A DNA stretch of 64,000 bases from Thalia democratica (GCA_965202585.1 OZ241828.1:54870001-54934000), one strand, 5' to 3'. Positions 20,712 through 47,400 are shown, numbered from the stretch's first letter. Notes: generated from the letters alone by a model not told the origin. Numbers and translations: made by a program.

Positions 20712-20947
20712 GTCTAAATGATAGCACAATAAGGTAAATTTTGAAAAACTTTGTACTTATGAGCATTACTTTATTTAAAAAAATCCAATTAAAATAAGCC
20801 ATTTTATTCAATATCCTGTAGTATTGGTGAATATAAAGGCCATTCAAGTTAGTAAAACTCTAGAGTTGTGAAATATGTTATGAACTTGGTGGTGCAGATT
20901 AAATATTTATCATTTACATATTAATTTAATACCTCGTCTTTAAAAAA

Positions 20948-21005
20948 ATGGATACTCCTGATAGAGAGACAATTGCTAGTTCATGCTTATTAGGTGAAAA
21001 CACAG
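20948..21005 (+). CDS. Candidate upstream first coding exon of the P5B-ATPase (MDTPDRETIASSCLLGENT)
   Basis: ATG-initiated 19 codons +1 nt ending at CAG|GTACTT (phase 1). Splicing to the TTTTAG acceptor at 23407 is in frame (D-K-T-K-M) with the ATG at 23418. Confidence 0.45.
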
Positions 21006-21891: not shown

Positions 21892-23417
21892 TTAAATAAT
21901 TATTTTGATGTTAGAATTGTAATTTTTTATATTCTTCATATTTCTTTTTTTTTTTTGTAATTTTTCAAACCATTTTAATAAAAAAATTAATAGCTAAACT
22001 GATAAAGCTTGAGAAAAATTGCTTGAAAGCTGTAGGTAAAGAAAGATTTTCTATGAAATAGTCTTTTTTTGTCTTTTATTATTTGCTTTTCTGTTAGGAG
22101 CTTAACTAATTCTCCAGCTTTGTACCCTCAAAAACTAATTTAGTTTGAAAGAAATATAAAAAAATTATCTACCTAAGTTAAATATATTAATTTATAATAA
22201 AATAGAAAAAAAGATTAACTTGCAAAAATTTCTTTGACCCCTATGACCTCAAAAAATCATAAAAACCAAAAGTATTCTAATAAATTTATTAAAAGATAAA
22301 CATAATTTTTACAATGAAATTTTATTATAAAAAAATATTAAAACAAATATCTCATTGTATATCTTGAAAGTTTTCAACATAGATCTATTGTTTTTACTTT
22401 TTCCAAATATAAAAATTTAACCAGCACACAATTGTGTTATTGTTTTTTAACGAAAAAAAAAAAACGCTCAAAAAGTAGTTTTTATTTATTATTTACTTAT
22501 AATCATAAATATGATTTATATTTATTTCAAAATTTTGTTAGTGTTTCCTTGGGCTACATTCTAAGGCTACAATTTTGATAGCTAACACAATTCTAAAATT
22601 TGATATAATTTTTGATAAACTTATCTTCTTTGTATAAACAAGTAAAATTTTGAAGGCTTTTCAATGTTTAAATTTAGTGATGTTATATTGTTCTAGTTTA
22701 TTGTTTTAATTTATGTATTTTTAAATTTATAAATGTTTGAACTTGACTTTTGTATAGTATGTATAATGACATTTAAATATGTAAGGTAATACCGTTTGAC
22801 TTCTAGCTCAAACAATTCTTTATGAAAATAGACTGAGAGTTTGTAGGCATGTAGCTCTATGTTTAAAGCCATATGGGGTCCAATATTTTTTTTTACACAA
22901 ATTAACATTAGACCTAATAAACTAATAGCTATAAGATACTTTTCACAGAATAGAAAAATATCAAATAACTTTTGAGATATTGTCAGTTGTGTAAAATTTT
23001 CTGATACATTTTTTACAAATGTATTGAGGATAAGTTTATTATTGTTGATTTTATCAGAATTTTGCAAAAAACAGCTAAAAATCTATCTTCTCCTCCATCA
23101 TATTTTATTTCATTTTAAATTATATGTAGTAACTTATCAATTTGAAATGACAGTAGTATGAAAACTTGTAACCTAGGAAATGTGACCTAATCAGACATCA
23201 ATAGAAATATTACTTTTATATGTTTTTTTATCATTTCAGTTAATATTTTAAATTTTATATTATTTCACTAGTCTCTTTGATTTAGTTAGGGATAATATAT
23301 TTGTATTTTAATAGTGTTTTTAAATATTTTTATTTAACTATAACCACTCTACTTAATGTTTTTATTTATATTTGATTGAAATTAAAAATTGTTTTTTAAC
23401 TTTTAGACAAAACAAAA

Positions 23418-26400
23418 ATGAAAGGAAATTTAGCTTATTGCATAATAAATGAAGGAAAAGAAAATGAAACCTTGTGTACTGCATATAAGTCAAAGCTGTG
23501 GAAGAAAGTTCTCTGTTTTTTGTTTACAGTAAGTGTTTTAGTTTTTAATTGCTAGTATTTGAATGGCTTATTTGTATAGTGAAGTATCTAAAAATACTTA
23601 AGGGCATAGGGGGGGTAAACACCCCCTTTTTTGGTTTTTGATCTTATTTTATATAGTTTTTACTAAGCTACAAGATGCTTTTTAAAAGATTGCTAAAAGC
23701 ATCTTGTAGCTTAGTAAAAACTATATAAAATAAAATCAAAAACCAAAAAAGGGTGTTTACCCCCCTATGCCCTTAAAAATATTATTTTGTAAAAGTTTAC
23801 TCCATTTTATTTATTAAAAAAAAAGAAATTCTCTTATTTTAATACCTAATGTGTTGCTATAATTTACTTTTATTAAAAGTAAACTAAATTAAATGTGAGT
23901 AGAAAATAATTACTTTTGTTACTTTTATCCTCAACTAAATAAGTAAATTATTAAAAGTGTTTGATTAAAAGTTTTTCAAATTATAATTTTTACAGATACT
24001 AACTGGTGGATTAGGTGGTCTAGTTTTTTATTGGAAGCCAGACTGGTGGTTGAAGTGTTCCCATGACAAATCAACTTTCAATAATTCTGATTATGTTCTG
24101 CTAGAAACTGTAAAAGAAGTCTCAAGAAATAAAGAGGTCGTTACTTGTTTTTAGTTTAACTTGTGAATGAAAAAAGTGCTAACATTTATATGAACGGTAT
24201 TAATGGTTGATTAAATAACCAATTCTTTAAACTAAGTAATTTGAGACGTAAATGAACTATGAAGATTTAACATAATCATGAATGAACTATTGATAAAAGG
24301 TTATACTAAAGCTAGCATTTAGTAAAATAAATAAATTCTATGGAATACCTTGTTTATAGTTAAATTTTTAAGGGAAAAACTTAACAAATAAGTTTAAATT
24401 AAAAATAAAATCAATTATGATATAAGAAAATTATTTATTTATGTTTTTTTTATTTAAACTTGTATTTATACTTTGAAAACCATGTAAGACGATTGAAATA
24501 TGTAATTTTCATATTAGAATAATTTTTTAAAATTATAACTAAGTTCATTAAAAGGGATCTAAGAATATTTTACAAAATTTTAAATTTAGTCTTAGTTAAA
24601 GGTCAAATTATGAATTACAAGATTCATTTTGTTGAACACATCTTCCTTACTTGTGTGATTTATTCGTTAAAAAAAATTTGATACAGCAGATAAAAAATTA
24701 TTCCAACTAAAAAAAAATACATAAAGTACATATCCTCCTAGGTTTTTTAATCTATTAAAATCAATTTTTTAAGAAACATTCCTTGTAATATAAAGAAAAG
24801 TGTATTGTAGTGTTTTTCAAAAAAAGTATTATTTTAAAAATTGTTAAAAAAAGGTAACTTATTTGGTTTAAAAGCTATAAATTTACTAAAAATAAAAGAT
24901 AGTTGTTAAAGGGACCTGTTTACTTTTTGAAAAGTGTTATATTGAGAAAGTTTTATAAAGATTTCTCAAAAATTGTAGAAGATTTATTTTTAACTTTGTA
25001 GTCTTTTTTTTGTATTAATTTGCTAATTCTGTAAGATACCTAAATAGCTCTTCAAGTTTTAATCCGTTAATCTTTAAAGTAATTTTGAGGTTAAAAAGTG
25101 GTAAAAATTGTTTGGTATAAATCTGCAAATTTAGAAGAAGTTGAAAATAAACTTTCTTACATCCTAAACAGTTGTTGTTTTGATTGATAATTTACTTAAC
25201 CACTGACATTAAAATGTAATTTGATCAAGTTAGACTATTTAGTGCTTAAATGCAATTGCTAAACAACCTAAGTTATCAGAAGGTATAAAATAGTATGTGT
25301 TAACCTATATATTTTATCTTTTTGATAATCAAGTTTTTCCTCGTGTTTGAAATAAGTCAAATTATAACTTTTGTGTAATTATCAGTTTAAGCTTGTTTGA
25401 AATTAAGCTTGAGATGTCACTAAACATTTGTATTAAATGCATATGATTTTGAAACTAAATATTTAAAGTTGTTATTTATTTTGAGCAATGTTTTTTTAAG
25501 ACAAATGATTATTACAATTATTAAACTTTAGAATGTGAATAAAAGAAAGACATATAGTGGTTAATATTTTATGTAAATTTTTATTTGTATTTTGACTTTT
25601 ATGTAAAAAATATCAATCTGTTTTTGGTGTTAAAGTTTTTTGTAATTTTATCAGGTGTATGAGTTTCTTTCGTTAGCAAAGCTCGAAAAGATTAAACAAG
25701 AAAAATCATCGGATAACAATAGTTCAACAAGGTTGTTTGCTTTTTTAGTTTTATTATTCATTTATTAAATATATATATTTAACTTATTTCTTTTATTCAA
25801 CTTGGTTTTAATCAAGTAAAAGCTGTTTTCAACATTTTAATTACTTTAATTCAAGAAAATATAATATATAATGAGTTAAACTACATAAAACTGTTATAAG
25901 TGTTAGTTAAAAAAAGATGTTGTTTAAGGATAGTCATTTTTGTATAGATGTAAAAAGAGCAAATATTTTTAAAAACTTCTTTTAAATTTTGCAGGTATGA
26001 AACATATTTTTCTTCCAACAATGCAATAGAGATGTATTTCAAATACCAAAACTTATACTTTGTGTGGAATGCTGTCAAATCAGTAAGACATTTAGATAAT
26101 TAAATTAAATTAAATGTATAACATGCTGTAAAATGTGCAATTTGGTAACTATTTTATGCTTAGGTTTATCAAATAAATTTATATAGTTCAATTATTGACC
26201 ATTAATGAAATTTTTCTGTTTTAAATGATTAGGTATTTTGTAATATTTGTCAAAAAACTGTTCTCAATCAGTTGAGAAAATTTGAAATTGTCAAATTTTA
26301 ATTAGTTTGTTTGAAATAGCTTTACCTAAAAAATGTTTAAATTAAAATATGAAATCGTTCATAATTTATTACTTGTCTATGTTTAGTTGACTTAGTTGAT

Positions 26401-29400
26401 TTTGGTTTTTATTTGATAATTTTTAAATACACAGTTTACGATTATTTAAAACAAAATAATAGAATTAAATTTATATTATTTACATTCATTATATTATTAC
26501 TAAGTAGTTTTTTTTTACAGAACTTTGTTGAAACAACCAAGTTAGACAGATGGGGAGTTGTGAAGCAAGTGGTTGTTTATCAGAACGAAGAGCAATTGAA
26601 ATGCAGTGCTTATCAGTCGAACATGCTGAAAAAACTCCTTTCTACTCTGTTTGTAGTGAGTCAAAATGATTAAAAGTCGCCTTCTTATCGTTTGCAGTTT
26701 TGCATCGTTATTTTATTCGATCTCCATTTAGGTTTAGTGTTTAAAAAAAGATTATAATTTTTACAGGTACTAACTGGTGGATTGGGTGGTTTAGTTTTTT
26801 ATTGGAAGCCGGACTGGTGGTTGAAGTGTTCCCATGACAAATCAACTTTCAATAATTCTGATTATGTTCTGCTAGAAAGCGTTGACGATGCACATTCAAA
26901 ACAGGTTTGTTTTATTTTTTAGTTTTTGTATTTTTTAAGTACCGTGTAGGAAATAAAATACAAGGTGTTACAAATTAATTTTGCTGTTTTGAATAACGAT
27001 TTTTGGTTACCAACATCAGAGTGTTAATTTTGTTTGTTCAAATTAAACTGCAAATAGTAATATTTTTATTTTCAGGTATTTGTATCAAAACTCAAGTACA
27101 TGCCTTCTGATCAAGCCCATTTGATGAAAGTAGCTTACATGAAATCCGAAGCTAGGTATTTGTTCATGTTATACTGGTTTTCAAATTTATCCTTTTTTAA
27201 TAGCTTTCTTTAATGAGTTGGTTAAGTAAAATAACTTAATTAAGTTTATAAAAAATATTTTTGCTATAGTTTAAAAAATATTATTTTAGTTTTACATTTG
27301 CAAAATACATTATTTAGGTTTTTTTTAAGTTGGTAACTTCTTAAATATATATTTTTTGTATTATATTTAGATCAAGTGATTCAAATGAGAAAACTTCTTC
27401 TACTTTGTACTTTGTCCACCAAGGTTTAAAGTTTATTTGGAACAATAGCAAATTGGTTAGTTGTGATTTTTATTTTCATCTCAATTCACTCTTTTTTTAT
27501 GTTTTTTTATTCTCTTTATTAGGGTAGACACAAATTAAATTAGTTATACGAGTTTTACATAGTAATAATCCTAATACAAGCAAAAGCATAACTAAGTTAC
27601 AATCCATATACAAGCAAGAGTGTTACTTAGTGCTTATTTGTCTTAGACCTTTGTTGAGATAAGCGGGTTGGAAAAACGCGCGAACATCGAGCAAATTTAC
27701 AAGGATGCTGAGACTGGGTTGAGTCAAGATGATTGTAAAAACAGAAATAAGTTGTTCGGATCTAACGTCATCAGTGTCAAGGTAATTTACAGCTTGAATA
27801 TCTTGTTTTTTAAGGTTTAACTTGAAGATTTCTGCACTATTGAAGATAAGCACAAATTAAAACTAGTACTTTTTTGGAAATGAAAGAAGTCTTAAAATTT
27901 ATGAACACTTACTTAAACTGAGGTTTACATTTCATATGTATATCAAAAATTATAATAAATTTGTAATTAAAGTTATATTTTAGTAATTTACATGAAAACA
28001 AACGTCGAGTTAGATGAATTGTTTTTCAAATTTAAACAGCTAAAATATACTCAAAAAAAAACGAATTTTGACATTACCACTTATTTAAACTAAGGTTTAC
28101 ATTTTATATGTATATCAAATATTACAATAAATTTGTAATTAAAGTTATATTTTAGTAGTTTACATAAAAACAAACGTCGAGTTAGATATATTGTTTTTCA
28201 AGTTTAAACAGCTAAAATATACTCAAAATCAAAAACGAATTTTGGTTGTTGTTTGTTGTATTTAAAATAACTGGTTAAAATTTATAATTTAGTTGCTAAA
28301 CTGGACATTAGTTAACTAAAATTACTAATATAAATAATAATAGTAATAATAATAATAATGATATATATAATGATTTTTTAAAAATTATGTTTTTGACTAA
28401 TTTATTTCTTTTTTTTTATGTGTACACGGGGCATTAGTTTGTTGATAGCTAAGTTAAGATTTTTCTAGTTAGCCAGCCATTAAAGTCCTTATACTTGATA
28501 AAAGTACTATAAATTTATTTAATACATTTTAAAACCGTTAAACTAAAATATCTATTTAATTCAAAGGTGCGACCATGGTATGTGATTCTGTTCAAGGAAG
28601 TTTTGAACCCCTTCTACATATTTCAAATATTTTCGTGCACTTTGTGGTACTTAGACGAGTATGAGATTTACGCCTCTTTTATTGTCGCTTCTTCTGTGTT
28701 GTCTGCCATAGTTTCAGTTTACGAGGTTTGTAGAAAGTACAAAAAAAACATATTTAAGTCTTATTTTGGATATCAATTGATTAAAAATTGTTTAAAGTGC
28801 ATATAGAAAAACAAAAATTTATTTTCTATAACAAAAAAAGAAATATATATATATACGAAAATTAAGCAACTTTTCAAGCTTAAAAAATAAGCTACTTTTC
28901 AAGGTATACTTTTTATCTATAACCAAACAAAAATTAATCAAACAAATTTTATATTTCAATAAAGTACTTGTTCAACATCTCCTAGTTATACAAATCAGAC
29001 TAAACAATTTTTACCAAAGAACCGGCGAAGCGCCGTGAAGATTCGCAAGATGGTCGATTACCACAACAACACCATGACGACGGTGATGCGGAGGATGGGT
29101 GACGGAACCCAGATGGTGGAGAACATTTCTTCCAGCTTGTTGGTTCCTGGTGACGTCATAATCATTCCGGCGGGAGGAATGGAATTGTCTTGCGACGCCG
29201 CTCTGGTTTCCGGTCGGTTTAAAATGATATTTGTTTATTATAAACGATATAAAATATCTTTTTTACCTGAAAAGATTTTATGGAAAATAAAATACATCTA
29301 CAGTTTTTTATGTAATGACGAATAAAACAGATTTCATTTGTTAAAAATTTACCTAAGTCATTTTAATTAAACTTTGAGTTTGAATAGTACTGAACACTGT

Positions 29401-32400
29401 TTAAAAATTTGAATAGAATAGTTTTCCTTAATATATTTATTTTAATAACTATTTATCTTAACTAATATTTTTTTTTATCTTAAGCAATATTTACTGGTGT
29501 GCTTTTTGATAAATTAATTTGCTATTCTTGATTTTGAACTTTTATTGTATGCTCGTAAATGTTTTTATAACATGTAGTTTGCTCTTTAGTTATTGTAAAA
29601 CTTAAACTAAACGATGAAAACCAGCAACAACTTAATTTTTCAGGAGTTTGTATAACCAACGAGAGCATGTTGACCGGTGAGAGCGTTCCTGTCACAAAGA
29701 CGCCGTTGCCGCAGGGACAGCAAATGAACCAGCTGTTTTCAACTCAACTGCACAAAAATCACACACTGTTCTGTGGCACACAAGTTCTTCAAACCAGGTG
29801 ATTTTATTATTTTTAAGTGAAATAATATTGTATTTTAGTTTTTCAATTATTATTTTTGTTAGTTTTAAAAACTCAAGCTAAAAGAAAAAATTGTGTTTGA
29901 CAATTATTTTTGTTTTGTCGGTTTTAGTTATTAATTTTGCACTTATCTTTAGAAAATATTGTGGAAACAGTACTTTAATCATGTTTATAAATAGGATAAG
30001 AATATCTAAAGTGAGAGCTTTTTCTATAACTAATTCAAATAAAAAAACACATTTGGTATATTTTTCCTTCACAAGTACATAGTTATCAAACTAACACTTG
30101 CATATCAAATATAAAATTTTTTGCGAACAATCAAAAAGGTTTTACGCGGGGGAGCAAGTGAAGGCGGTGGTGATACGGACGGGGTTCCAGACGGCCAAGG
30201 GGAGGCTCGTGCACAGCATCAAGTACCCCAAGCCCGTCAACTTGAAGCTGCTGCAGGACGCCTACAGGTTCCTGTGCGTGTTGGGCGGCATCGCAATGTG
30301 CGGTTTCGTCTATTCCGTCGTGATAATGGTGGGTTGCGACTAGTGTTTTGTGGTTGACTTTGTATTTTTGTTTTAAATTCTTAATGTATTTAGAGTATAG
30401 TATTTTGAGATATTTAGTTAAAAATTTCGGAAGTTTTATATAATTTTTGGACATAAAGTTAACATTTTCCTCATTTATATCCATCAGTTTGAAGTAGTGT
30501 TTTATATGTTTTCAAAAAAACAAATAAAGTTATTGAGCTAAAATTCTTTTATGTTCAGTACAACAGCGGAGAATCGACTCGTGAAATAGCGCTGAGAGCT
30601 TTGGACATTTTCACCGTGGTCGTGCCCCCGGCGCTGCCCGTTGCCATGACAGTCGGGATAGTGTACGCCCAGCAGAGGCTGAAGAGGAGCAAGATATTCT
30701 GCCTGTCGTCACAGAGAATCAACTTGAGCGGGCAGGTAGTTATTTGTTTTATAAGTTGATTTTTTTTAGGTAAGTAATTTGTCACGAATTGAAAAAAAAA
30801 TAGTATAACCATAAACAAGTGTTCTTCAAAATGTGCTCACTGAAACACTCACATGACCTAAAGCTCTTTAATAATTATTTAATCAAAACCATGTTTTGCA
30901 CACCACCAGAAATTTAGAAACAACTATTGTTTTTAATCTAGGTATATTACTTATAGATATTTTACTTTACATTTAAGAAATAACTAATATTGTCTTAGGT
31001 TTGCAACTAGATTTCAAAGTTATGTAAATCGATGTGTTTTAGAATTATTTGATTACAACAAATCTTAAAACTATTAATGTTAATTTTAATTTAGTATAAT
31101 CGTTTTTAGTTTATCTAAAGTATTACAAATGTTTCAAGTAGATTAATTAATTATTGTTTACATTTTGAGATAAAATTTAATAATTAAAAAGTAATAATTT
31201 GTGGTAGTTTGTATAACTAAAAATATAATTATCTAAGTTTAATGTATTTATACTAAATTGGCTGAAAAACATTGTTTTTATATTAATTAAAAAATAAGTT
31301 GTGCATAGAATATTGTTTTAAATTGAATATGGTCTTGAAACAAGGATGATAACAGAAAAAATATATGCCAAATTTGTAAATTTAATGTTACTTAGTACTC
31401 CATAGATATTACAGAAAGTCTTAGTTTTTATTTCGAACACAAAATTTTTGTACATATGCTTAAATTTAGTTTTGTTACACTTTTTATCAACCAAAAAGGT
31501 GTTGTAAGCTCTTAATTGCATGTGAAAACTCACGTATTTTTTTAGATACAATGACCTTGATCTTGTGATATTTAGTAGACTGTAGTTAAAGTAAAAGTGT
31601 TGTGAGCAAAAATAACTTATTCATTCATTACATTTGTAAAAATGAAAACATTTTTTTTGTTTTAACTCGTGATCATTTTTAACAAATGGCGCGGTTAAGA
31701 AAACGTTGTAAAACACGCTCGTTATACCAAAGTCTTACATTTACTATTCTATCCCACAACAAATATTTTTGAATATCCGATTGCAGCACACAGAGCAGTG
31801 TTTTTAACGAAAAATTTTTTCTAACCAGATCGACGTGGTGGCCTTCGACAAAACGGGCACGATCACCGAGGACGGATTGGACTTGTACGAGGTGGTGCCT
31901 GTGACGAGGACGCGAGAAGGCGGGTGCAGGTTCGAGCCGGCGCTCCACCCCAAGCAGCTGAAGAGCGTTGACGAGCGGAGCTTGGAAGTGGTGAGATCGC
32001 TGGCAAGCTGCCACACGCTCACCAACATCGACGGAAAGCTGTGCGGCGACCCGCTCGACCTCATTCTGTTCGAAGCGACCGGGTGGAACCTGATCGAACC
32101 CGAGGTTTGAACTTTGTGTTTGTTGATGATGTTTGGTTTTACCGAAATATGTTTAAGTTTAATGCACCCTCGTTATGTTTTTTGTTGTCACTTTTTTTTT
32201 GATAAAATTTATAACAAGTGTAACTTTTATTATTTATGCAGTTCCGTTTTTTTTTGTTTTTCAAACACAGTATCTACTCTTTATGGTGCTTATCGTATAA
32301 TTTATTAGTGTATAATGTTTTTTTTGAATAACTGCACCATGTTTCTTGCAATTACTCGCAAGTGGTCGAGTTCTGCTTGCAAAACAAATAAGCTTATGTT

Positions 32401-35400
32401 AGTTTAAATGTTTTAAACTTTAATTAAAATCTCGCGGTGGCTTGTTGCAGATTTGCCAAGTTTGTAATCTTGAACGCATTGCAGTATAGCAACTGGAGAC
32501 AAAAATCATCCATTAGATGAAAGGGGAATTGTGTTGAACAACTGTGTACACAATTGCCAGTTTAACTTCAAATAATTTCTTTGATTTTATCTTTTACTTT
32601 CAAACACACACACGTTTTTTTATTACATTTATACATTTATCTTATAATTATAATTAAACTTGACATATTTTTTTTATGGTTTTTCTGACTACTCTATATG
32701 TTTTTTTTATTTTATTTTCTAATGTGCTACTTTTCAAATTTAATTAAAGTCTGGTTAACTATTTTTCTAGCTGTATATTTATTATTCTGTTGGTGTGCCA
32801 ACATCCAATGTCTCAGTTGAGTCTGGTTGACTGTCTTTGGGTAGATTGTCAACCTGACCTTTTTGCTCAAATTTTTCCTGCAGACGGGGTGACTTTCTAG
32901 GAAGTTTATGCTTAGGACCCTCTGCAGGCAGCTTTTTATTTATATTACTTAAATTGGAAATAGTAAATATAAAATGCTTTTATGCTAACTTATAATTTAT
33001 AAGTGAATTTTATCTATCAATAATAGAGAATGTTTTATATAAGTTAAGGAAGACAATTGAGGTAATTAATATATTATATAAAAGAACATTAATAAAATAG
33101 TGTAAGCACTAGATTTTTAAAATATAAAATACTTTTAAAACCTTTATGTATCACTTGGCAAAATTGCAAACTCAATAATAAACCAAGCTTATTGCAGTAA
33201 ACTATAAAATAGTTAAAGACCTGTCAACTATTTAAATCTTTAAAAAAAAAGTTAAAACAGTTAAATAAACTTAAATAAAAACTTTTATAGAGCAATAAAC
33301 TATAAAAGGCTTAATTAACTATTAAACATCTAGCTCAAATATCTAGCGCAATTGAACACACAGTTTAAATATTAACTCTATATTTAAACTATACTTACAA
33401 TTAATATGCATTAATAATGTTCAAATTGAATTCTTTTAGTAGATTCTTTTCTCAACTACACAAAACACAACTAACTGTACAAGTCAATGTAATTGTTATG
33501 TTTTTTATGGAATTTTGTTAATATCTTACGCCTCACTAAACCTTGTTCTCATTGACTCATTAGGTTGTGGGGTGATTATGAATTCACTTCCATATATGGC
33601 CGTTATTGTCCGGCTCTCATATTCAGAGTTCAAAATAATGAAAAATGCAATTAAATGCAGCACTTCACTACAGCTCATCAAATTTTTAATGAAAACGTGT
33701 ATAAGTTATTTAAAAATTGGAAGATTTACTAAAAGACCAAAAATATGAATTTTTTATTTCATTTATTATGTGTTTGTAATAGTTTTTAAGTAAGCGTTCA
33801 ACCTAGTTTTTTACCATGTTTATACATTAGTTTTTTTTTAAATTTTAATTTATTCAAGTTGAACACTCATCTTATGGAATTCTATCTAATGACTGTTTTT
33901 AATAGTTTTACTATATTCATTCTATGACGCTTCATCATAGTACGTTTGATAAGTGTGAAATGTAAAATCCGAAATATCAAAAATGTTTTTATTAAAATGT
34001 AATAAAAATGTTAATAAAAACACTTATATTTTCTACATTTACTATACTCATTAAATCACAAAAAATAGTTTAATAAGTTTAAAATGTATATTAATCAAAA
34101 TATCTATCAACAATTTACAAACATGTTAACAATTTGTTATGATATTAATTAGTTTTATTAATTTGTTATACACTACAGGCGGAAGAAGAATCTCAGTTCG
34201 ACAACATCCAAAGCACTTACGTAACTCCCGCCTTGTCTCTATCTGCTGTTAGTTTGAGTTTATACAATTAGTTAAAAATATATTATTGAAATAAACAGAA
34301 AAGCTGTTAGTTTGAAATTACTGATTAGACTTCTATAAAACTGGATTTACTTTTTTATTTCTCCACATTTATTTATTGTTTTCAAAGTTTGTTAAGCAAA
34401 CAAAGTTATAAGCTTTAAGAGCTCAACAGTGCAATAAATGAATAATTCTATTAAGTTTTTAATTCTATTTAAGCAAGAATAATTTATATAACGTACTGAT
34501 GAGTAAAACTGTATATGTCCTTTTTCTTTAATTAAAATACTTTGAAATGTTTTTTTACAAGAAAAATTGTGTTATATTTCAAACACGATAGAATAACGAG
34601 TTCAACCTCTTGTTGAAATAAAACGTTCCACGCCAGCTTCAGTGCAAATCTACTGACGTTTATGTAACATGTACTTCGAAACATTTCGAACAGAAAAACA
34701 TTTATCTTATAAAATATAATATATGAAAATACGTTAAAATATTTCTAATAGAAAAACGAGGCCAACTCCTCGGAGCACGAGGCGGGCATCGTCAAGTGCT
34801 TTCCGTTCGAGTCCTCCCTGCAGCGCTCGTCCGTGATAGTGAAGCCCACTTCGAGCGGCAGGAAGGAGATGGTGGCGTACATGAAGGGGTCGCCCGAGAA
34901 AGTTTCCACCCTCTGCACGCCCGACTCCCTCCCCGAAGACTTCCAGTCGACTTTGAAGGTTTTTTTAAAGTTGTTTCATAGTGTTAATTTTGTAATATTT
35001 CTTTAAGTTATGAAATATGTTCAAACGATTTTAGATTGCAGTTAAAAATACTTTTTCCACGTAAAATATTTATTTGAGCAGTTCTTTCAAAATTTATTAG
35101 TTTCCTTTTCAAAACAAAACAATTACTCACTAAGATAATGTACTTTTAATTGCAACTAATTGGGTATATAAAGTATTTCTGTAATTTTATACAAGTGAAG
35201 TGAATTAGGTATGTTTTTCTTTTTTTTTTTATTTCAAGTTGTTTTTAGAACTTCATTAAAAAAAACATACAAATCTATACTCAAAAATATGATCGTATTG
35301 AGCTGCTTTAAAAATTTATTTTGGCAATATAAATTATTACTTTATATAAGTTTCACTTTTTAGTTCGTAGTCGTAACATGATATATGTAAACTTTTCATT

Positions 35401-38400
35401 TAATAGAGAGTCAAAAGTGTTCTTGCTAAAATATTTTCAATTTGATTTAGTGTTAAATATTTTCAGTACAGTAGTTTGAAGTTGTATTGTAATAAAGTCA
35501 TGGTAGTTCTTAAATATTTTCGACTAATTAAACATAAAGTTTTTTGTAAATAGTTTAAAAACGACTGATAAAATGTTAATGGACAAGTTTGCGTTGCAAA
35601 TTCGAGCGAAGCTATTTCGCAATAAAACTTGAAAACAAATATTTAATTTTAGTTTAAAACGTAATGTAAGTACTCTTAATTCTCTTCTGGTAGCATATGG
35701 ACTTTGATTATTATGTGTAAATAATATCCAAGCATTGAGAAGTAGCTATAACAAACTCTAGTGTTTTATGTAAGTGATTAGTATATCAAGATTAGTGTAT
35801 AAAAATAATGTAAATGTTTAACTTGCTTTGGAAGATCTTTTGAATATTGTTTAGATTAATGCAGTTTTAAGGGGTGTAAAAGAAATTGCTTAGCATATTA
35901 AAAAACATTAATTATGTAAAGATAAAATAAATTTGCAATTACTTGCTTACTATAGTTATAAAAATGGTATAAACAAATTACTATTGTTTTTTTCAATAGT
36001 TTTTTTTTTATTTCTTAGAAGTAGTGTTAAAGTAAAAGTTATTTAAGTTCATTACTCAGACATACTACGTGAAATTTTAAAACTATTATTTGAACGCTGT
36101 GAGTGTGAGTAATTAATTATTTTAATAATATTGTTTAGAACAATTTGTTGGTAAATTTTAGTAAATAACTTGACAAATGTTGAATTTAAGCAAAAATTTA
36201 GTAGGAGCACGTTATTAAGTTTTAAGACAATTAGTTTTATCTATTTCACAAATTATTAGGCAACACTTTTATTGATGACCAAATAAACCTGTATAATTTT
36301 ACAAAGTTAACCGATAATGTGTACACACAGTTTGTATGTTTGTCTTTACTCGACGGGCTGTAAAAAACGTTGAAACAATATCAACCCAAAAATTAAGCAT
36401 GGCTTACTATTATCATTCTTGTTGCTTATACTTTTTAAGGCACTCTAATATTGTCTGTTTACAATGCAGTCTTTAAACTAAGATGTTAACAAACCATCAA
36501 CGATCAGGCGTACACGCAACAAGGGTACAGGATGATCGCGTTGGCCCACAAACCGCTCAACGCAAGCTGGTTGAAAGTGCAGAAGATCGAGAGGTCGAGT
36601 GTCGAGCGCGACCTGCAGTTCTTGTGCCTCGTCGCCCTGCAAAACAAGCTGAAGCCCCAGTCGCAAGGTGCTTAAAAATTGTTACTGCAAGTTTAATTTA
36701 AATGAAACGCTTGTCAGTTTTTTTTTTTCAGTTTTATTGTTTTAATGAGTTGTAAATAGTTTTTGTTATCTCTCAATCAACTGTTTGCAGTCAACTAATT
36801 TAAAGAAATTTTTATGTACAAATAAAATTAAAAATATTTTCAATTAAAATGTTCAACATGTTTTCCAGGCGCGCTGAAAAAGCTGAGAGACGCGGACATC
36901 CGCACCCTGATGGTGACCGGAGACAACCTGCTCACAGCGTTGAGCGTGGCCCAGGACAGCGGCATGGTCAGCGCTTACGACGACGTCATAATTGCGGAAA
37001 CGCGGTTGCCAAGCGACGGTGATGACGTCGACAAGCCGACGCTCGTATTTAAATACTGCGAAGGTTACTCGGCTAATTTCAACCCTGCAGATGTGTTAGT
37101 TGTTATATATATAGTCCACAATATTTTAAATAAAAATAATTTTTTATTTTAGTCAGCGAGAGTAAAGCTAAAGCAATTGATAAAACTTGCATTAAACTCA
37201 ATTTTTAATTGATATTTTACACTTAATAAGACTTTTGTATACTGAAAAATTCCTTTCAAATTTACTAAGTTCCTTAAAAATCCACAAAATATAACTTTTA
37301 AGAACTGTTACTCAAACTACTTAATGTTTTGATAAATGTATATAAAAAACATTCAGTTAGAGTCAGAGTCTTAAAATGATGAGTAACATGATTGATAATT
37401 ATATATTTTTAATTGTTATTGATGGAATTGCTTGAAACGACCTTGAAACAATGTTGAGGCGAGGGAAGAGGCCCACCGCTGGTTAAATAAAAACCCTCAC
37501 ACTCGCACACCTAAAATTCAACAACTTAAACTTTTTACCTTAATTTTAAAATCCGTTTTATATTACCTTAATGCTGGCAAAAAATTTACGTAAAACGTAA
37601 AGTTAAATTGTTGTTTAAAAACTATGATGGTTGAGTGCTCACATGCACTCGTATACCTGAATTTCTTCAATTTAAAAGTTTAATTATCTCAAGTTCTGAC
37701 TTCAATGTTTGTTTAAAGCAAAACTTTAACTTTTTTTATACAACCCCAATGCTAATGCAAACTTTCTGCAAAACTTAAAACTAAAATGTTGTTTGAAAGT
37801 TCGGGTGGTTGAGTGTTGAGCCGATGATTCATTGTTTCAGGTCCCAGCGGTGAGGCTGGTGATTGTGTTGATCGTGACGTCACAGTACGTCTCTTCAACT
37901 TTTCACTAGCCGGTAAAGGCCATATTTTTATGGTTTGAATTTGTACTTTTGTTGTTTGTTGAAGTTGTAATTAACATTTTTTTGAAGTTGAAACTGCATC
38001 ATTTTATTTAGATTGTTTACCTAATATTTAACATTTTTAAACGTTAGTCTCCTATAGTACTTGATTGAAAAAAAAAGGTCTTTTATCAAACACAAATATG
38101 TTTCAACAAATTTTCATTAGTGTGATGCAATTGTTACAAAATAAAGAAAATTATAAAGTTATATAGCCTTGTAATTGCATCAGAAATTAGTCAATTAAGC
38201 AAAACACAAAACAAAAAAAAGTAATTAAAGTTCTAAATAAACATAATTAAATATAACATAAGAGCACTAATTAACCAAACAAGGATAATGAATAATCAAC
38301 GTCTTTCTGCTTGCATAATTTTGGTTTATTTAAATGTGTGTATATTGCTTCAATTTTGACCAGGTCAAAAATACCGTAACAGCTTCTTAATATTTTAAAA

Positions 38401-41400
38401 TTTGTTTCATTATAATTTTCCACAAATGGGATTTTTAATTCAGATATAGATTGACCTTTAAATGTATTAAAATACCACTTTATTGCAAGACACAATAATT
38501 TTTTCATTATTACTATTATTATTGTTATTATTATTATAACTTTTATTAAGAATTTAAGCGCTTTCGAAATTCACAAACTCCCTTGTCAAAAATACTAAAC
38601 ACTCACAAGTTAACTAAACATAATATATATGGAGTGAAACTAAATCATTTGTAAAAAAAACACAAGTGATTAAAACGATAAGTAATTAAGTAAAATGGAT
38701 CATTAATAAACAAAAAAATAATTAAACCAAAATGGATTATTTAAATATATTAATAGTTACTCTTGATCCTTTATCAAGACCAAGCTGATTAATTATATTG
38801 GTTAGGGATTTTTAATTAAATGTTCTGATATTGAAGATTATTCATTGCATTTAAAGTTGCTATACTAAATGTTTTTTGCTGATTGTAAATATCTTCTCTT
38901 ACACACTTTGCAATTCTAGTTTCAAGATGCCTAGATGTATGACCAATATAACTGTTTGAACAACAGCATTAAAACGTGTAAACCACGCGACTTTTATGTT
39001 TTTTAGATATTAGGTTTCTACCTTTAGAACTTGATGTAAATTCACTCTAGGTTTAGCAATACGATATACTTTTTCCCTTAACTTCTTTATGTTTCTTTCA
39101 GTCTAAGTTGATTTTTTACCTGCATAAGGCAAAATCAAAAGAACTGGATATTTTCAGGACCGTAGGGTTTCATGTAATTTAATCTATTAATTTCAGTTTT
39201 AAAAACTATCAATCAAAGAATTAGGATATCCGTTCTATATTAGCATTTCTTTTATAACATTAAGTTCAAACTCAAAACTTCTGGAGAAAATATTTTCTTA
39301 GCTCTGTAGAATAAGGTTTTAATTAAAACAATTTTCTCCTTCTGTAAGATTGGAAATTTAGATATTGACCCGTGAACGTAGGTTTTCTGAGTACCGACGA
39401 GATAAATTTATTATATTTTATTTTGATCAAAACATCTAAGAACGATATTTGTTTATTTACTTCAGTTTCTTTGGTGAACTGGATAGCAACATGTAGGGAA
39501 TTTAATTTCTCGAAAAATAAAGAGCTAACTTTTTCACTGTCACTAATAATGAAACAATCGTCAACGTATCTTACGTATTTACATAAATTTTTGCTAGATT
39601 TTGTTTGTTAAAGTGATGTTTTCAGATTTTTTTAATCATACTTTCACTACTTATATAATTTATTTTACAATCCAAGTAGTTTAAAATGTAAAGTATATAA
39701 ATAAAGTTTTAACTTTCATTTAACGTTTCTGATTAAAAAACTTGATTTTGTCGGCGTAATTTTGTTCACTAGTATAAAACGAATTCTAATAAAAAAATTT
39801 AACTATAAACATTTATTATCTGTTGCAAAACACTGTACTAATGAACATTATTCCACTCAAGTTTTGGACTTTAAAATTCTAAAACACTTACACTCTGTTG
39901 ATATAAACTGTAAAAAAACACTTAAAGCCAAAAGTTCTAGCATTCCTAAAAGTTGACTCAGTTTAATTTTTGTCATAACTTTTCAAAAAAGTAGAAAATT
40001 GAAAACAATACATCAAATACTTTTATAGACGTTCTTTATAATTTTTTTGATTACCCTAGCTCCTCCTTACAGTTAAGTGTTCATACCATTTTTTGTTATT
40101 TTTGTAACTAATTTTTTTAAAGTTAACTTAGGTAAATATAGTTTGTCAGCTTTAATTTTTAGTCAAGTTTTTGCTTAAAATATATTGGATGTCCGACTAA
40201 TTTAAAGTTTCATTAGAGGTGTACTACTTACTAAATTGCTAAATAGACTATATTACATAACTTTACTACAAACTATAAACATATGGTTTGTTATAAGGTT
40301 ATAATTATCAAAGTACATAAATTATATGAGTATGGTTTAACATAACTAAGAAGCTATGTATTACTATATTGAGGTGTTGTGAGTCATTTAAACTCTATTC
40401 GATAACCAGTACTTAATTTACTAAAATTAATTTTAAGTTTATTCTTTTTTAAAGTGTTTGTTGCTGAAAAAGTTAACATTAAAATATATAGATAAACCTT
40501 TAAGTCCATTTAAATTTGAATACAACATACTATTTAAGTTTCTTTTTTGTTTAAAAGTAACTAAGTTGAAAAATGACATCAAGCTTAAAAAAGTTTAAAG
40601 TAAATTTGATATTAAAGCTCAAAAAAAGAGTATAATTTAGTATTTATTTTTACTAATTTTGCTAAGCATTAGCTCATAACAAATCTGTGAGGTACGAGAC
40701 TTAAAAGAAGAAATGTACACATAGATTTAATAATAATAAATTTTCAGTTTAGTACATATAAAAGTTTCATAAATAAATAACAAAAGCACTGTATCTAAAT
40801 AAAAGAGAAAAATATTTTTATTTTACCAATTTCATTTTAAATAATTCACTAATTTAATTTTATAAAATAAACAGTCAAGATGAAATGTATGTACTTGACA
40901 TAAAAACAGTTTTTTGCGTGCATGTTAAGACTGAAAAAATTGATCAAAAAAGGAAGACTGCTAATTTACGAAATAGTTTGTAATAATATTGTATTTTTTC
41001 AAAGTTTGTTTTGTAATTTATATTACACAAAAAGTTAAAAAAATAACTTTTTGAGTTTTTGTTACAAATTATGTTGGGTTATTTTATTGTTGTTTAGATA
41101 TTCGGAGAATTTAAATAAAACTAGATTTTATAATTACTATTTGTCATAAAAAATGTTAAAAATCAAAAATTAATTAAATTGAAATTTAATAACAACCGTT
41201 TGTGGAATTAGCTATTTGGACATTTTAAATAAAAGTAGATTTTATAATTATTATATCTCATAAAACTTATGTTGAAAATTAAAAATCAGTTAATCTAAAA
41301 CTTAATAACAGCTGTTTGTGGAAGCAGCTTAATTTTTTTTCGTAGTTTTTTAAGGCCATTTCGAAATCCAATATTTTACTTATGAAATTTAACACTAGCT

Positions 41401-44400
41401 TTTATATAAAACGCTACCTAGTTTATATAGAATTGAAAAAAAAATTGAAACAGCGTATTTTTTATAAAGTTTCTAACACAAACATGTGGACCACCAATTT
41501 TTCGTCATCAATTTTCTGAAAATAAAAAAGTTCACTAGAATCTATCTTTTCCTTAGTTAGTTCTAGAGACCTTAAACATTCAGTAAACTTCCCATATATG
41601 GCTTAATAGGTTTTGAATGTTAGAATTTAAAAAGTAGTTAATAATTATAATTTTCATAAAAAGAAAAAACAATAAAAAGTGTTTTGTTTCTAACTTTTTT
41701 ATTTTTAAAAGTTAAAATAATACGTGTATTGAAAATATTCAAATATTAGCAACGGACTAACTGTAAAAATTTAACGAAGAATAGTTAAATTATGAAGAAG
41801 GAGATACATTTTTAGTGAAATAGTATATTTTCGTGTTTTTTGTTTGCGCCTTTTATAAGAAACCTGTTGAGCTTACCTACTTCGATTACTTATATATCAA
41901 AATCACTTTGAGTTTTGTTAAGTGATAGATTAAACTATATGATACTTAAGATACAACTCTAAAAAATTAATTCAAATTTTTAAAAAACAAGGTGGTATTA
42001 AATTTAAACAAGCCTTATATAAATAAATTTTATTTTTAAGATTTGTCCTAAGTTTCTTAAATTTATTTTGTTATATAGACACTTTCAAACTATAAGCAAG
42101 CGAAAACTAAAATAATATATAAAACTTTTGATATAGTTGATAAATTCTAAGAAATGTAACTATTTATGAACTTTTGCCTTTTAAAATATCCAAAAAGGTT
42201 TTTTTGTTAAGATTTTTTTTAAACAGTTTTGAATAATTACCCCATTATTTACAATAATGCTAGTTATTATCTTTTTTCGACGTCTTCAAAACAGGATATA
42301 GTCGTTAAGAAAATTAGTTTTATGGTAATAGTTTAAATTTAGGTGGTCTTTTCAAACAAATATTTTCAGAACTCTAGATTTAGTTCATATTTTTTAGTCA
42401 CTTTTTAGTTTCAGGATATAGTTGTTAAGAAAATTAGTTTTATGGTAATACTTTAATTTTAGGTGGTCTATTTATACAAAAATTTTCGAAACTCTAGATT
42501 TAGTTCATATTTTTTAGTTTCTTTTTAGAAATTGATACTATTTACCTTTACTTGTTTGAAAAAAATTTTCCATAAAAAATATAATTTTAGCCAATTTAAT
42601 ACATACTACTTTTTATCTAAATTTGTTTCAAAAATCTTTCTAAATTTTTATAAAAAGCATAGTTTATTTAAATTTAGTTTTATTTTATACATTTTATTAT
42701 AGTTTTATTTTAAAGATATTGTCACTGTTTGTGGGATGTTTAACGATTTTTTTGCTACTTATTGTTGTTTGTTTCCAGTTTAGAAAAAAATATTTCCGAT
42801 ATCATAATAACAAAAACATGGCTAGATAAAAATGCGATTAAAGTAGTCAAAACTTATAGTAAGAGAAACAAAGCATGCTAGATCAGTCACTTTTGTAAGC
42901 ACCTTAATGAATTATTTAAAAACAAAACAAAATTGTTATCTTTTTATAATGAAAGGTCAACTTTTACTTTATAAGTAAAAAAATATTATTAACCCACCAC
43001 AGTTTAAAATTTTATTTTTTTGTGTTTATAGCTAGTATGGAGAGCTTTTTCGTAAACTAAGATTTATTTCTTTTTTTATACGTATAATGTTATAAAAAAA
43101 CTACTCATGTTTAATGATGAACCTTAATCTAACTCTTGTATTGTAAAATACTCTAACTCTGTTTTGAAATCATTATATTTAGTTTTATTGAATTTTATAA
43201 CAGTTCACTGAATGTTTTAAGTTTATTTAAAGGTTATGTGTGGTTTTTATATATTCTTTTGAACCTCTATTTCAAATTAGCTTAAAACTACGGGAAACAG
43301 AAAAAGGTATTTACAAAATATTTTCGTTTATTTACAAAACATTTTCAATTGTAAAAATGGTTTAGATGGATATTTTGTTTTTATACAACACTATTTTAAC
43401 GGTTTACATTCAAAACCTAGAAAGTTTTTAAAAAAGAACTTTTGTAAATGTTAAATAAAAAAAGTAGGTAGTTTAGGTCTGATTCTATAAATTTTTAAGG
43501 AAGAGCATAATGTCTCTTTATAATCTTAAATGTCATGAATATATCAGGTTATAGATCAAATTAAGTGCTTTTATATAAACCAACTACTGATAAAATCAAG
43601 TTTTATTTCAGAATTTTTGTAACATTCCTTTTTAAACTAGAACTTCTGAAAACCATTCGAATATTCAATTAAACTTGATTTTTTTTTTTCATAAAAGTCA
43701 ATTGTCACAGCACAATGTTAAGCTTGGTATAAAACACAGTTTTACTGTAATATAGCTATAAAAATTAATAACATTTAATCTTATGGTGCAATTTAAGAGT
43801 GACTTTGAGTTACATGCATTGCTATGAAAGAAGGTTGATATATAATCGTTTTTTTAATTTCTGGTTAGATTTTTATAATCTAAAACAATTTTTTTTAAAT
43901 GCTGTAATCATACCAACTACCACAACAATAATAAACTTAAGTTGTTTTGATAGCGGTATTTTTGTTACTATTATGCAAAAGTTACGGTAATTAAAATATG
44001 TTTAACAAAACAAGTAAACCAAATGGCTTCTGTGTGGTTCAACATTAACAATTTTACATTTAAAATTGTTGTTTATTTTAAATTACGAAGTAAATAAAAC
44101 TAGTATTATTAGTTTGATTTGTTTTTTAAGTTATATAGTTTTAGCTTTGTTGTAATTTATTTGATGAACATTATGAATCTATTACACTAAACTAGAAGTA
44201 AGTAATTTTTCAAGTCGGTGGGCCAGATCTTCCAAAAGACAAGTCTTTTGCACGCCGGACTTGTTAAAAAGTATCTTGACACTTTGCATAATTTTGAAAA
44301 AAAATACTTTAAAAACAAAACTGTAATGATAAAGTTGTCTGAAAAGCTTTCTACTATCCTGATTAACAAATTTCAAAACATTTTTAAAAACTTATTTATT

Positions 44401-47400
44401 TTGTGAAAGCTGTTCTCAACCTGAATTGTATGTCGTGGGTTTTTTTAATTAGAAGGCCGGATCCAGCCTGCGGGCTGTACATTGCTTACCTCTAAACTAA
44501 AAAGTTATAGTCTTTATACATGCTAATAAAAAAATACTATCCTGTAGTAATTTTTTGTGAAGAAATAATTAGATTATGTTATTATAAGAAGTTAGTTTGC
44601 TATTATGTTACTGCAATATAGTTTTTTAACACTCTTTGAAAAATAAAAACTTAGTTTCTTGAACAAAAACTTTATAAGAATCGATAACTTGCTCAACTAT
44701 TTTATTATTACTTTTGTTTGTACCGGCATTAATTTAAATCATTGTGTTTTCTTTAAAATAGTTTGTCTCGTTTTTTAAATAAAGCAAAAGTTAAGACGCA
44801 ATAAAGCTATAAAACGCACAAACTATAAAATTCGAGTTATTTTTGAAACTATAAGCAAATTGTTGCAGGCTGTATTTCAAGTAATTTGTTTTGTCTCTAA
44901 AATTATATGTGTGGGAGTACATTTTTGTATGTTTCTATAAAAGTACCTACTATGTTTAGCAAAACACGATCAAAAGTATTTTTAGTTTTGTGTTTTTGCA
45001 ATCAAAGAACATTTTTCTGGTTTAATCTTTTTGCATTGATATGTTTTATAGACAACATATTTTTTTTTACTTTTGTGTCAAAATACTTATATGTATGTCA
45101 ATTATAATAGTTTCACTTTTCTTAAATTTAAAAGTTTGATAGAAAGTTTTTTTTGAATAACTTAAGATTTTCTCAAAATAAAATATAACTATTAGTTTAG
45201 TTTTATTAATATAAATTTTTATTTGTTTTTAAAACTGAATTTTATTTTTTTTATAAAATAAGTCTATATATATGATAAAGAATTTTCTTCGTGTAGAAAA
45301 ATTAAGCAATTATTCATAAATGATATTAATTAAATAATTAAATTTTGCATTGTTTATGAATTATTTTGATTTAAATCATTTTATGAATGTTTCTTATAAA
45401 AATGTAACAAACAGTAGTTCATTTGGACATGAAAAGATTAAAGAAAAAAGAAAAAACAGTCTGAAGTATTTTGATTCAAAAAATTCTTCGAAAAAGGTTA
45501 ACATTTTTTTTAGTTTATTTTTAAATTCTGTATGAACTCAACATTAAAGTTTTAAAAAAAACATTTTTTTAAGTAACGTATTGTCATTAAATAGTTCACC
45601 TAGTTTTAAAATAAAATAAAAACTAACAGTTTTATTCTTAGATAATTGAAAAAACGCGGTAAAGATTTTTGAATAACTTATATTTTGTCATATATAAATC
45701 TTGAGTGTAACAAAAATGCCATGTTAGTTTAGCACTCTCATTTGGGTATGAGTAATACAGTTGGTTATAAAACAATTGATTTTTAGTATAATTTAAAAAA
45801 AGTTTTTTGAATAGCCAGCTTAGTTGTTTTTATACAATTTTATTTTTAAGAAACTGAATAAGCTGTTAAAGTAAAAAAAAAAAAACAATTTCTTAAAACA
45901 AACTGAAGCCGTAATGTTTACACTGTGTAATTATTATGAATAAATATTTTTAGTATCAATGCTAATGTAGGTAAATTTTCACAGTACAGTTAAAAAAGTA
46001 ATTTAAACTTAAAAGTATACAAACAGTGTAAACAAAAAAGCTCTATACTTATAAAATTTCAATGACAAAAAATATTTTAAATACAAGTTCACTTGCTCTC
46101 TTAAAATATTGCTAGTTTCATCATCATGCAAACTTCCTGCATTAAGCTTTTAGTTAACAAACTTACATATTAAACGAAAGTTCTACTTGATTATACTTTT
46201 AAATCAAAGTTTCCAATTCGTAAACATAAAAAAAAGAATAAACAACTATGATTTATTACTCTGTAAATTAGGAAACAATGTAATGTAAATAATTAATCAA
46301 AATTTCAATTTTTTTTGTTCTCTCCTTTGTGTTTATTCACCTTTTAAAGTTGCTGTAAATATTTGCCTGCTTGTTTAGTGAATCCAAGGTTAAGTTCTTT
46401 GTGCACATTAAACAGTAGACAAATTCTTTTGACCAATATCTTATAACTGTTTTGCGCACGAAGTATTTTGTTTGTTGCTTCAGCATTAGTTAATGTAAGG
46501 TTAACGTACAAAAGTGATACTAATACTAATTGGTCACCATTAAAAAGCTGATAGCAAGTTTACTTGGAGTAAAGAGTATATCTTTAAATAAAATACTTAA
46601 AGTTTACTTTTATGTATCTTGTTTAAATTATCATGTCTGTTCAAGCAGTTCTATGTAAAAGTGCTGAACAGTTGAATTTGTTCTACAGAACTGGCATCTT
46701 GCATTGACTGGAACGGATTTCAGTAATATTAAAAATTATTTCCCCGATTGGATGGAAACTGTTGCTTTGAAAGGTTTGTGACTTTTAGTTTACAAGTGTT
46801 TAAATAGCTAATGTACATTTGTCAGTTTTCAGATTAGTTATTTTTAGTAAGCTAAGTTATTAAACTAATAAATTGGCGAGTTTGTCTTATTTATAAACAT
46901 GTCTTATTGTTACCTAATGTACTTTTCAACGTAGGTCGCTTTTCAAGCACTAACTGTACCAATTATAATTAAAAAACTGTCACTGTAAACTTAATTGTTG
47001 TGTGATCTTCGTTGTTAAAAACAAACACTGTACATGAAATTAAGTAGCTCTAAATCAAGGAGACTCAACAACTCGAAACTTGCTTTTTGATCAAAAATAA
47101 GCAAATTATACTTAAGAGCACTATTTTATAAATTTAAAAAATGTTTCAATATAAAATAAAGTAGTTTGACAATTGAACATCTTCTAAACAGAACGTGCTA
47201 AATAATTATTATTCTAATAACATAAAAAAAAAACTCTAATAACAAACTCACAATTAAACAGAGTTGAAGTTCTAACAATAGATAAACTATACAAAATTAA
47301 TTAATAAAGATTTTTATTTGCAAAACTAAGTTTCACCCTTAAGGGATCTTCATTTAAAATCTGAAGAATAAAAGTTAAACATGGAAGATACTGTAAAGCA

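Follow-up and report, generated by a model that had tools for sequence, protein, structure and literature searches.

P5B-ATPases such as human ATP13A2 and ATP13A3, yeast Ypk9 and the ascidian "polyamine-transporting ATPase 13A3" carry one N-terminal domain (NTD), and their catalytic DKTGT motif lies at about residues 490–530. In published structures, the NTD forms a beta-barrel that sits on the A-domain and carries an amphipathic loop, whose three short helices dip into the cytosolic leaflet of the membrane (PMC8233418, PMC8564547). This loop carries two of the three stretches that bind phosphatidic acid (PA) as well as phosphatidylinositol 3,5-bisphosphate (PI(3,5)P2), and it shifts together with the A-domain as the transport cycle proceeds (PMC8233418, PMC8564547). 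Disease mutations of ATP13A2 also fall in the NTD, and its part in lipid gating is debated (PMC8564547, PMC8233418). Protease protection showed a cytosolic N-terminus and a "Ma" segment that is not membrane-spanning (PMC5837089). Here, we describe a gene in a 64,000-nucleotide (nt) stretch of the Thalia democratica genome (GCA_965202585.1 OZ241828.1:54870001–54934000; hereafter the window), which by its sequence is an intact tunicate gene for a P-type ATPase of the P5B group (ATP13A3-like and predicted to transport polyamines). It has the same core motifs as the canonical pumps, including PPALP in M4, the same PF12409 NTD family and the same G-x3-L-x3-W-x-P dipping loop; however, it encodes two tandem NTDs, and DKTGT lies at about residue 651.

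The gene carries two complete sets of NTD exons

The gene lies on the + strand. We set the exon borders by reading positions 23000–29000, and the borders were fixed by the frame. The features are as follows.

20948..21005, + strand: E0, probable start ATG at 20948 and 19 codons; ends in phase 1 and is spliced to 23407
23407..23528, + strand: E1, NTD copy 1, part 1; RNA contigs X7-17, X1-1 and X2-5 cover 23405–23528; the ATG at 23418 is Met24
23996..24136, + strand: E2, Ma segment and WKP lipid-site motif of copy 1; PF12409 match of 40.8 bits; X2 contig 5 joins E1-E2-E3
25655..25731, + strand: E3, NTD copy 1, ends in phase 2; placed by frame and RNA contigs
25995..26082, + strand: E4, end of NTD copy 1; spliced to 26521 in RNA contigs X7-18 and X1-2
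26521..26655, + strand: E5, chimeric breakpoint exon; first ~19 codons from E9, remainder from exon 1; 0 mismatches in X7 contig 18
26767..26904, + strand: E6, Ma segment and WKP motif of copy 2; PF12409 match of 40.2 bits; X1 contig 3 has twice its neighbours' depth
27076..27155, + strand: E7, NTD copy 2, ends in phase 2; covered by X1 contig 4 and X7 contig 19
27371..27455, + strand: E8, end of NTD copy 2; placed by frame and RNA contigs
27647..27781, + strand: E9, linker after the NTD, then the A-domain start (Cation_ATPase_N); X1 contig 4 joins E7-E8-E9-E10
28567..28725, + strand: E10, transmembrane helices M1-M2; placed by RNA contig and tblastn
29020..53280, + strand: remaining P5B ATPase gene, with 14 or more further exons, stop at 53278–53280; tblastn collinear with Ciona proteins
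23980..24107, + strand: gene-conversion tract, copy 1 side; 16 nt of intron and 112 nt of E2, 97% identical to 26751–26878
26751..26878, + strand: gene-conversion tract, copy 2 side; 97% identical to 23980–24107

Canonical GT..AG borders flank all eight NTD exons and exon 27647–27781. The intron phases are 0,0,2,0 in copy 1 and likewise 0,0,2,0 in copy 2, and the nine joined exons (23418–27781) form an open frame of 330 codons without a stop. Over 129 residues, the two copies are 51% identical as proteins (E=6e-43). The joined protein has two stretches that match PF12409, the P5-ATPase N-terminal domain (E=7.7e-38). To avoid circularity, we also made an NTD hidden Markov model (HMM) from 49 other P5B proteins and excluded the double-NTD gene from it. 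Copy 1 scored 75.9 bits (positions 6–157) and copy 2 scored 86.4 bits (positions 7–157). The matches span nearly the entire profile, indicating that both copies are full-length domains. In the entire 801-Mb assembly, the top two PF12409 matches were exons 23996–24136 and 26767–26904. The initial annotation of this DNA had proposed two NTD sets of four exons each with the same phases, in an open frame free of stops and frameshifts, and had predicted two PF12409 matches; borders, frame, alignment and profile search bore this out on each point.

Both sets are joined in one transcript

Assembled contigs were placed on positions 23300–28800. They came from the marine metatranscriptomes X1 and X2 (one sample) and X6 (the other sample), from runs of source organism A (including X7) and from DNA of a second organism, B; X5 was a DNA run. 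We treated X7 as RNA because its contigs are free of introns and its total of 47 Mb is transcriptome-sized.

X7 contig 18 (organism A, 434 nt) carries 25993–26082 at its positions 135–224 and 26521–26655 at 225–359; the two segments abut, with 0 mismatches. Metatranscriptome X1 contig 2 carries the identical 26082>26521 join, and in both X7 and X1 this E4>E5 join has at least 90 nt on either side. That is, the splice from 26082 to 26521 on which the initial annotation depended was found in RNA contigs of two independent samples. Further contigs extend the chain in both directions: X2 contig 5 joins exons 1-2-3, and X1 contig 4 joins 27076–27152, 27368–27454, 27646–27778 and 28564–28725.

The contig depth in X7 was 22 for exon 1, 28.9 for exons 4–5, 31.1 for exons 7–8, 23.9 for exon 9 (two alleles summed) and 21.7 for exon 10. 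In X1, the depth was 12.5, 10.2 and 13.1, and it reached 25.2 solely where exons 2 and 6 share k-mers. Contig depth was therefore flat from copy 1 through copy 2 to the downstream exons, and inclusion of both copies looks constitutive. No transcript with only one NTD set was seen among the assembled contigs, where rare variants drop out. One mRNA thus includes both NTD sets, apparently constitutively.

The duplication began and ended within exons

The initial annotation had read exon 26521–26655 as a chimera that marks the breakpoint, and three observations sustained this reading. First, the last 24 intron bases and the first 26 exon bases at 26521 resemble those at 27647 (family D3). Second, the last HMM position was reached in both copies through the Phe of the "NF" and "TF" that open exons 26521 and 27647, respectively. 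Third, the 3' two-thirds of exon 26521–26655 aligns with exon 1, and its likeness to the post-NTD exon seems to extend over about 19 codons. The segment that was duplicated, in tandem and in frame, started midway through exon 1 and ended about 19 codons inside the first post-NTD exon. Breakpoints in the same codon phase would have yielded the chimeric exon together with another complete NTD exon set.

DNA contigs of organism B covered 30 of 30 bins, both copies included. Two of these contigs, 26061–26408 and 26379–26702, overlap each other and bridge the end of copy 1 and the chimeric exon, indicating that the duplication is also present in organism B.

The duplication is old and was followed by gene conversion

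We placed the gene model in a tree of 63 P5B proteins. It fell inside the tunicate ATP13A3-like clade with 100% support in the Shimodaira–Hasegawa-like approximate likelihood ratio test (SH-aLRT), as sister to Phallusia and Ciona. The occurrence of this tunicate in marine metatranscriptomes suggests that it is pelagic or abundant for some other reason. The orthologues of Ciona intestinalis, Phallusia and Styela have a single NTD. A second P5B paralogue lies in the same genome (G000:C8:46815300–46839242; loci L006 and L007); of the two genes, the double-NTD one resembles the Ciona ATP13A3-like protein more closely. We considered a double NTD in this paralogue as well and rejected it, as the NTD exons of the paralogue form a single set.

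After masking of the converted tract, copies 1 and 2 were sisters (90/83) within the tunicate NTD clade, with branch lengths of 1.63 for copy 1 and 0.96 for copy 2. The copies are each other's closest relatives, indicating that the duplication is lineage-specific. Outside the tract, the proportion of synonymous differences (pS) was 0.735, that is, synonymous sites were saturated, and the non-synonymous divergence (dN) was 0.65. Saturated synonymous sites suggest that the duplication is old. By these sequence comparisons, it postdates the split from the sampled ascidians, yet is old.

One tract departs from this divergence. Positions 23980–24107 and 26751–26878 (family D2; 128 nt) are 97% identical, with a synonymous divergence (dS) of 0.14 and a dN of 0.012. 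The tract is sharply bounded and crosses the exon–intron border, 16 intron bases included. This is the pattern of a later ectopic gene conversion, which re-homogenised the part of the exon encoding the Ma segment and the adjacent lipid-site motif. In the metatranscriptome, exon 2 (23997–24134) differed from the window at 5 sites, and the exon-6 contig (26767–26855) was identical to the window and had double depth. Exon 2 may have been fully converted to the exon-6 sequence in the metatranscriptome population; full conversion there would mean that gene conversion is ongoing or polymorphic. Among the runs, the exon variants comprised 10 synonymous and 5 non-synonymous changes, which is consistent with constraint, although these numbers are too few to compare the copies.

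A doubled NTD is rare among P5B-ATPases

We surveyed 273 P5B-type sequences: 150 diverse representatives of clusters, 120 sequences related to the Ciona protein and 3 further members of the P0078 cluster. An NTD was detectable in 170 of them, and the survey was partial. Within this scope, a single NTD, which the initial annotation had taken as the family rule, was upheld in 169 of the 170 P5B clusters; the P0078 cluster alone has two.

P0078 (ENA ERZ23486787 scaffold_1468; L005:6001–8643) is a metagenomic, uninterrupted open reading frame (ORF) of 880 residues, and its neighbours are Maelstrom and BET-bromodomain genes. It grouped with trematode P5Bs in the tree. Its proximal NTD is canonical, and its distal NTD is degenerate: it has lost the WKP motif and sits on a branch of 4.41. 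Common ancestry of the two double-NTD cases was rejected, as one nests in the tunicates and P0078 with the trematodes. P0078 is therefore, by its position in the tree, an independent origin of the double NTD, probably in a flatworm-related lineage.

Searches for further cases gave negative results. The N-terminus of P0078 had no relatives outside its own cluster. A 136-residue peptide from the E2 tail to the E6 head had no match in a collection of 5.8 billion proteins, in which the species and its close relatives have no proteins. The representative search with the DKTGT exon gave no match above about 60% identity. In the literature, whose coverage was incomplete, we found no description of a doubled P5 NTD.

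Possible role of the extra domain and alternative explanations

Both copies keep the family-invariant G, L and W and the near-invariant Y and P of the dipping loop. These residues correspond by spacing to G242, L246, W250 and P252 of Ypk9 (described in PMC8233418). The NTD profile maps to ATP13A2 residues 35–175; exon E6 alone, a query too short for the purpose, gave no match in a phmmer search against the PDB, and the profile matched ATP13A2. The initial annotation had assigned a membrane-embedded Ma hairpin to the NTD. Membrane association of this segment stood, whereas a spanning hairpin did not (PMC5837089, PMC8233418). [quoted passage not shown]

We expect copy 2 to take the canonical A-domain site beside transmembrane helices (TM) 1/3/4, because it is the proximal and better conserved copy and has kept the native linker after it. 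Copy 1, which is distal and faster evolving, would hang on a linker remnant of about 20 residues. There, it would most likely act as an extra anchor in the cytosolic leaflet and as a module binding acidic lipids of the PA or PI(3,5)P2 type, and it could change the lipid dependence, membrane avidity or targeting of the pump. Such a role for the extra copy in the pump is what we infer from these arguments. Overall, we consider it likely that an in-frame duplication placed both NTDs in the mRNA, yielding a predicted pump with a distal, lipid-binding copy 1.

Several points weigh against this explanation. The contigs of X7 are free of introns, which suggests RNA, and it is from this feature that its nature was deduced, as the run type has no record. 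The evidence consists of contigs rather than reads, from which rare copy-skipping isoforms may be missing, and depth is a rough guide. The double-NTD protein is predicted from RNA and DNA, the functions of its copies are deduced from sequence, and the placement of the two domains is reasoned from published structures. In addition, the faster evolution of copy 1 is as compatible with relaxed constraint as with a new role, and gene conversion requires no selection.

A bolder possibility, which we hold only tentatively, is that both NTDs are functional lipid sensors, the distal one being a second, independently evolving sensor or anchor whose lipid site has been kept matched by gene conversion. 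If so, either the lipid gating (cooperative or dual-lipid) or the organelle targeting of this P5B polyamine transporter would be altered, and animals would have come to such a solution at least two times (in a tunicate and in a flatworm-like lineage).

Alternatively, the double NTD may be expressed while the distal copy is a tolerated, neutral and slowly degenerating appendage, and copy 2 alone serves the pump. The longer branch of copy 1 (1.63 vs 0.96) agrees with this, as does the distal copy of P0078, which is very degenerate (branch 4.41, WKP motif lost); moreover, long N-terminal extensions are tolerated in P5B pumps, Ypk9 having about 200 extra residues (PMC8233418). However, despite saturated synonymous sites, copy 1 keeps four intact exons, canonical splice sites and a 75.9-bit HMM match and has no stop. 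Its dN is well under the saturated dS, the few listed variants in its exons are 2 synonymous and 1 non-synonymous, and a distal copy has been kept in two independent lineages. We consider a neutral appendage rather doubtful.

The duplicated exon sets could also be used alternatively, so that the main proteins would have one NTD of variable composition; the initial annotation had likewise offered skipping that selects one copy. Owing to the matching phases, skipping or the hybrid joins E1>E6, E2>E7, E3>E8 and E4>E9 would all keep the frame. A common splicing signal could be the reason why E2 and E6, together with 16 intron bases, are nearly identical, and rare variants are lost from assembled contigs. 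Nevertheless, the E4>E5 join is present in contigs of two independent samples, other contigs join E1-E2-E3 and E7-E10, and the splice sites are all strong and canonical. The flat contig depth, which doubled only on k-mers common to E2 and E6, lends skipping no support, although contigs could miss rare isoforms. Alternative use as the main mode thus appears improbable.

That the doubling is an artefact, either a mis-assembled repeat or a truncated gene or pseudogene that stands by itself upstream of an ordinary P5B gene, is barely credible: copies that are 51% identical in protein, with introns that align in one 128-nt block only, are too different for an assembler to have made both from one locus, DNA of organism B runs through 26061–26702, and RNA contigs over the junction, in an unbroken frame without a stop or frameshift, rule out a separate gene. 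The initial annotation had named both artefacts as grounds for abandoning its proposal; we checked them, and neither held.

Start exon, pump core and intron repeats

The initial annotation had started the protein at the ATG at 23418, which is probably internal, as exon 1 opens at 23407 behind an acceptor. RNA contigs open exon 1 at about 23405–23407 behind this acceptor and extend upstream; their loose end matches 20985–21003. The frame is open from the ATG at 20948 into exon 1, and an in-frame stop lies just upstream, at 20927. The protein probably starts at ATG 20948, 23 residues ahead of the Met at 23418. Within E0, an in-frame 6-nt indel polymorphism (20978–20990; Ser-Cys lost) separates the window from the metatranscriptome contig, which is consistent with a coding exon.

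The Ciona P5B proteins were collinear with the whole gene in tblastn, down to the stop at 53278–53280. After splice-junction choice, the gene model is at least 1346 residues long, with three uncertain junctions (32104>34752, 37063>46672 and 49943>51656). Between donor 49943 and acceptor 51656, the phases mismatch, and the Ciona guide has about 30 residues without a match (49944–51655); a small exon is probably missing from the model there. The catalytic motifs of the model are intact: TGES at residue 481, PPALP at 608, the phosphorylation site DKTGT at 651, TGDN at 875 and GDGANDC, for the P-type consensus GDGxNDxxAL, at 987. The M4 signature is PP(A/V)xP(A/V)x in P5B and PP(E/D)xPx(E/D) in P5A pumps (PMC5837089), and PPALPVA at residue 608 fits the former. 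The M4 exon matched the solved human ATP13A2 (E=2e-15). P5B pumps have ten transmembrane helices; as a sequence-level hint of the topology here, hydropathy gave two Ma-like segments (54–72 and 201–219) and core helices.

The GC content at third codon positions (GC3) varies within the gene (20948–53277). The NTD exons have values of 0.21–0.44, exons 27647 and 28567 are at about 0.5, the conserved ATPase-core exons lie at 0.55–0.95, and the poorly conserved exon 46672–46773 is back at 0.32; the genome background is 22–35% GC. GC3 seems to track protein conservation along the gene.

Two introns contain repeats. Intron 1 has a near-perfect palindromic element of about 185 nt (23596–23778) that resembles a miniature inverted-repeat transposable element (MITE). 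This palindrome had a depth of about 500,000 in an X5 DNA contig, compared with a few hundred nearby, and it occurred in many RNA contigs with diverse flanks. In intron 9, tandem 161-nt units at 27901–28061 and 28073–28233 are 91% identical, with a spacing of 172 nt (family D1).

Comparison with known systems

Of all parts of P5B pumps, the NTD is the one least understood, and a natural two-NTD pump is a ready-made experiment on lipid gating. It comes with built-in controls, namely, the single-NTD paralogue in the same genome and the single-NTD ascidian orthologues. The gene is also a clean case of domain doubling, with an in-frame breakpoint within two exons, preserved phases, a conversion tract and a faster distal copy. 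In addition, it carries a warning for annotation, as such genes are easily split into a "truncated" gene and a normal one.

Tandem N-terminal domains are widespread and well studied in the P1B heavy-metal ATPases, whose metal-binding domains number, for example, six in ATP7A and ATP7B. The tunicate gene has a similarly multiplied N-terminal regulatory module on an unchanged core; however, the P1B modules are ferredoxin-like copper-binding domains, whereas its own is a beta-barrel with a membrane-dipping, lipid-binding loop. The P5A pumps (Spf1/ATP13A1) have a homologous NTD beta-barrel and show that N-terminal membrane contact has varied (PMC8233418). There, two true transmembrane helices (Ma and Mb) are inserted in one NTD (PMC5837089), whereas the tunicate gene repeats the whole NTD. 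P0078 likewise has two PF12409 stretches in one ORF, the proximal one canonical and the distal one more diverged. Unlike in the tunicate gene, its copies are about 25% identical, the distal WKP is lost and no gene-conversion tract was seen. The tunicate gene is a rare, expressed natural variant of a well-known pump family rather than a new kind of system.

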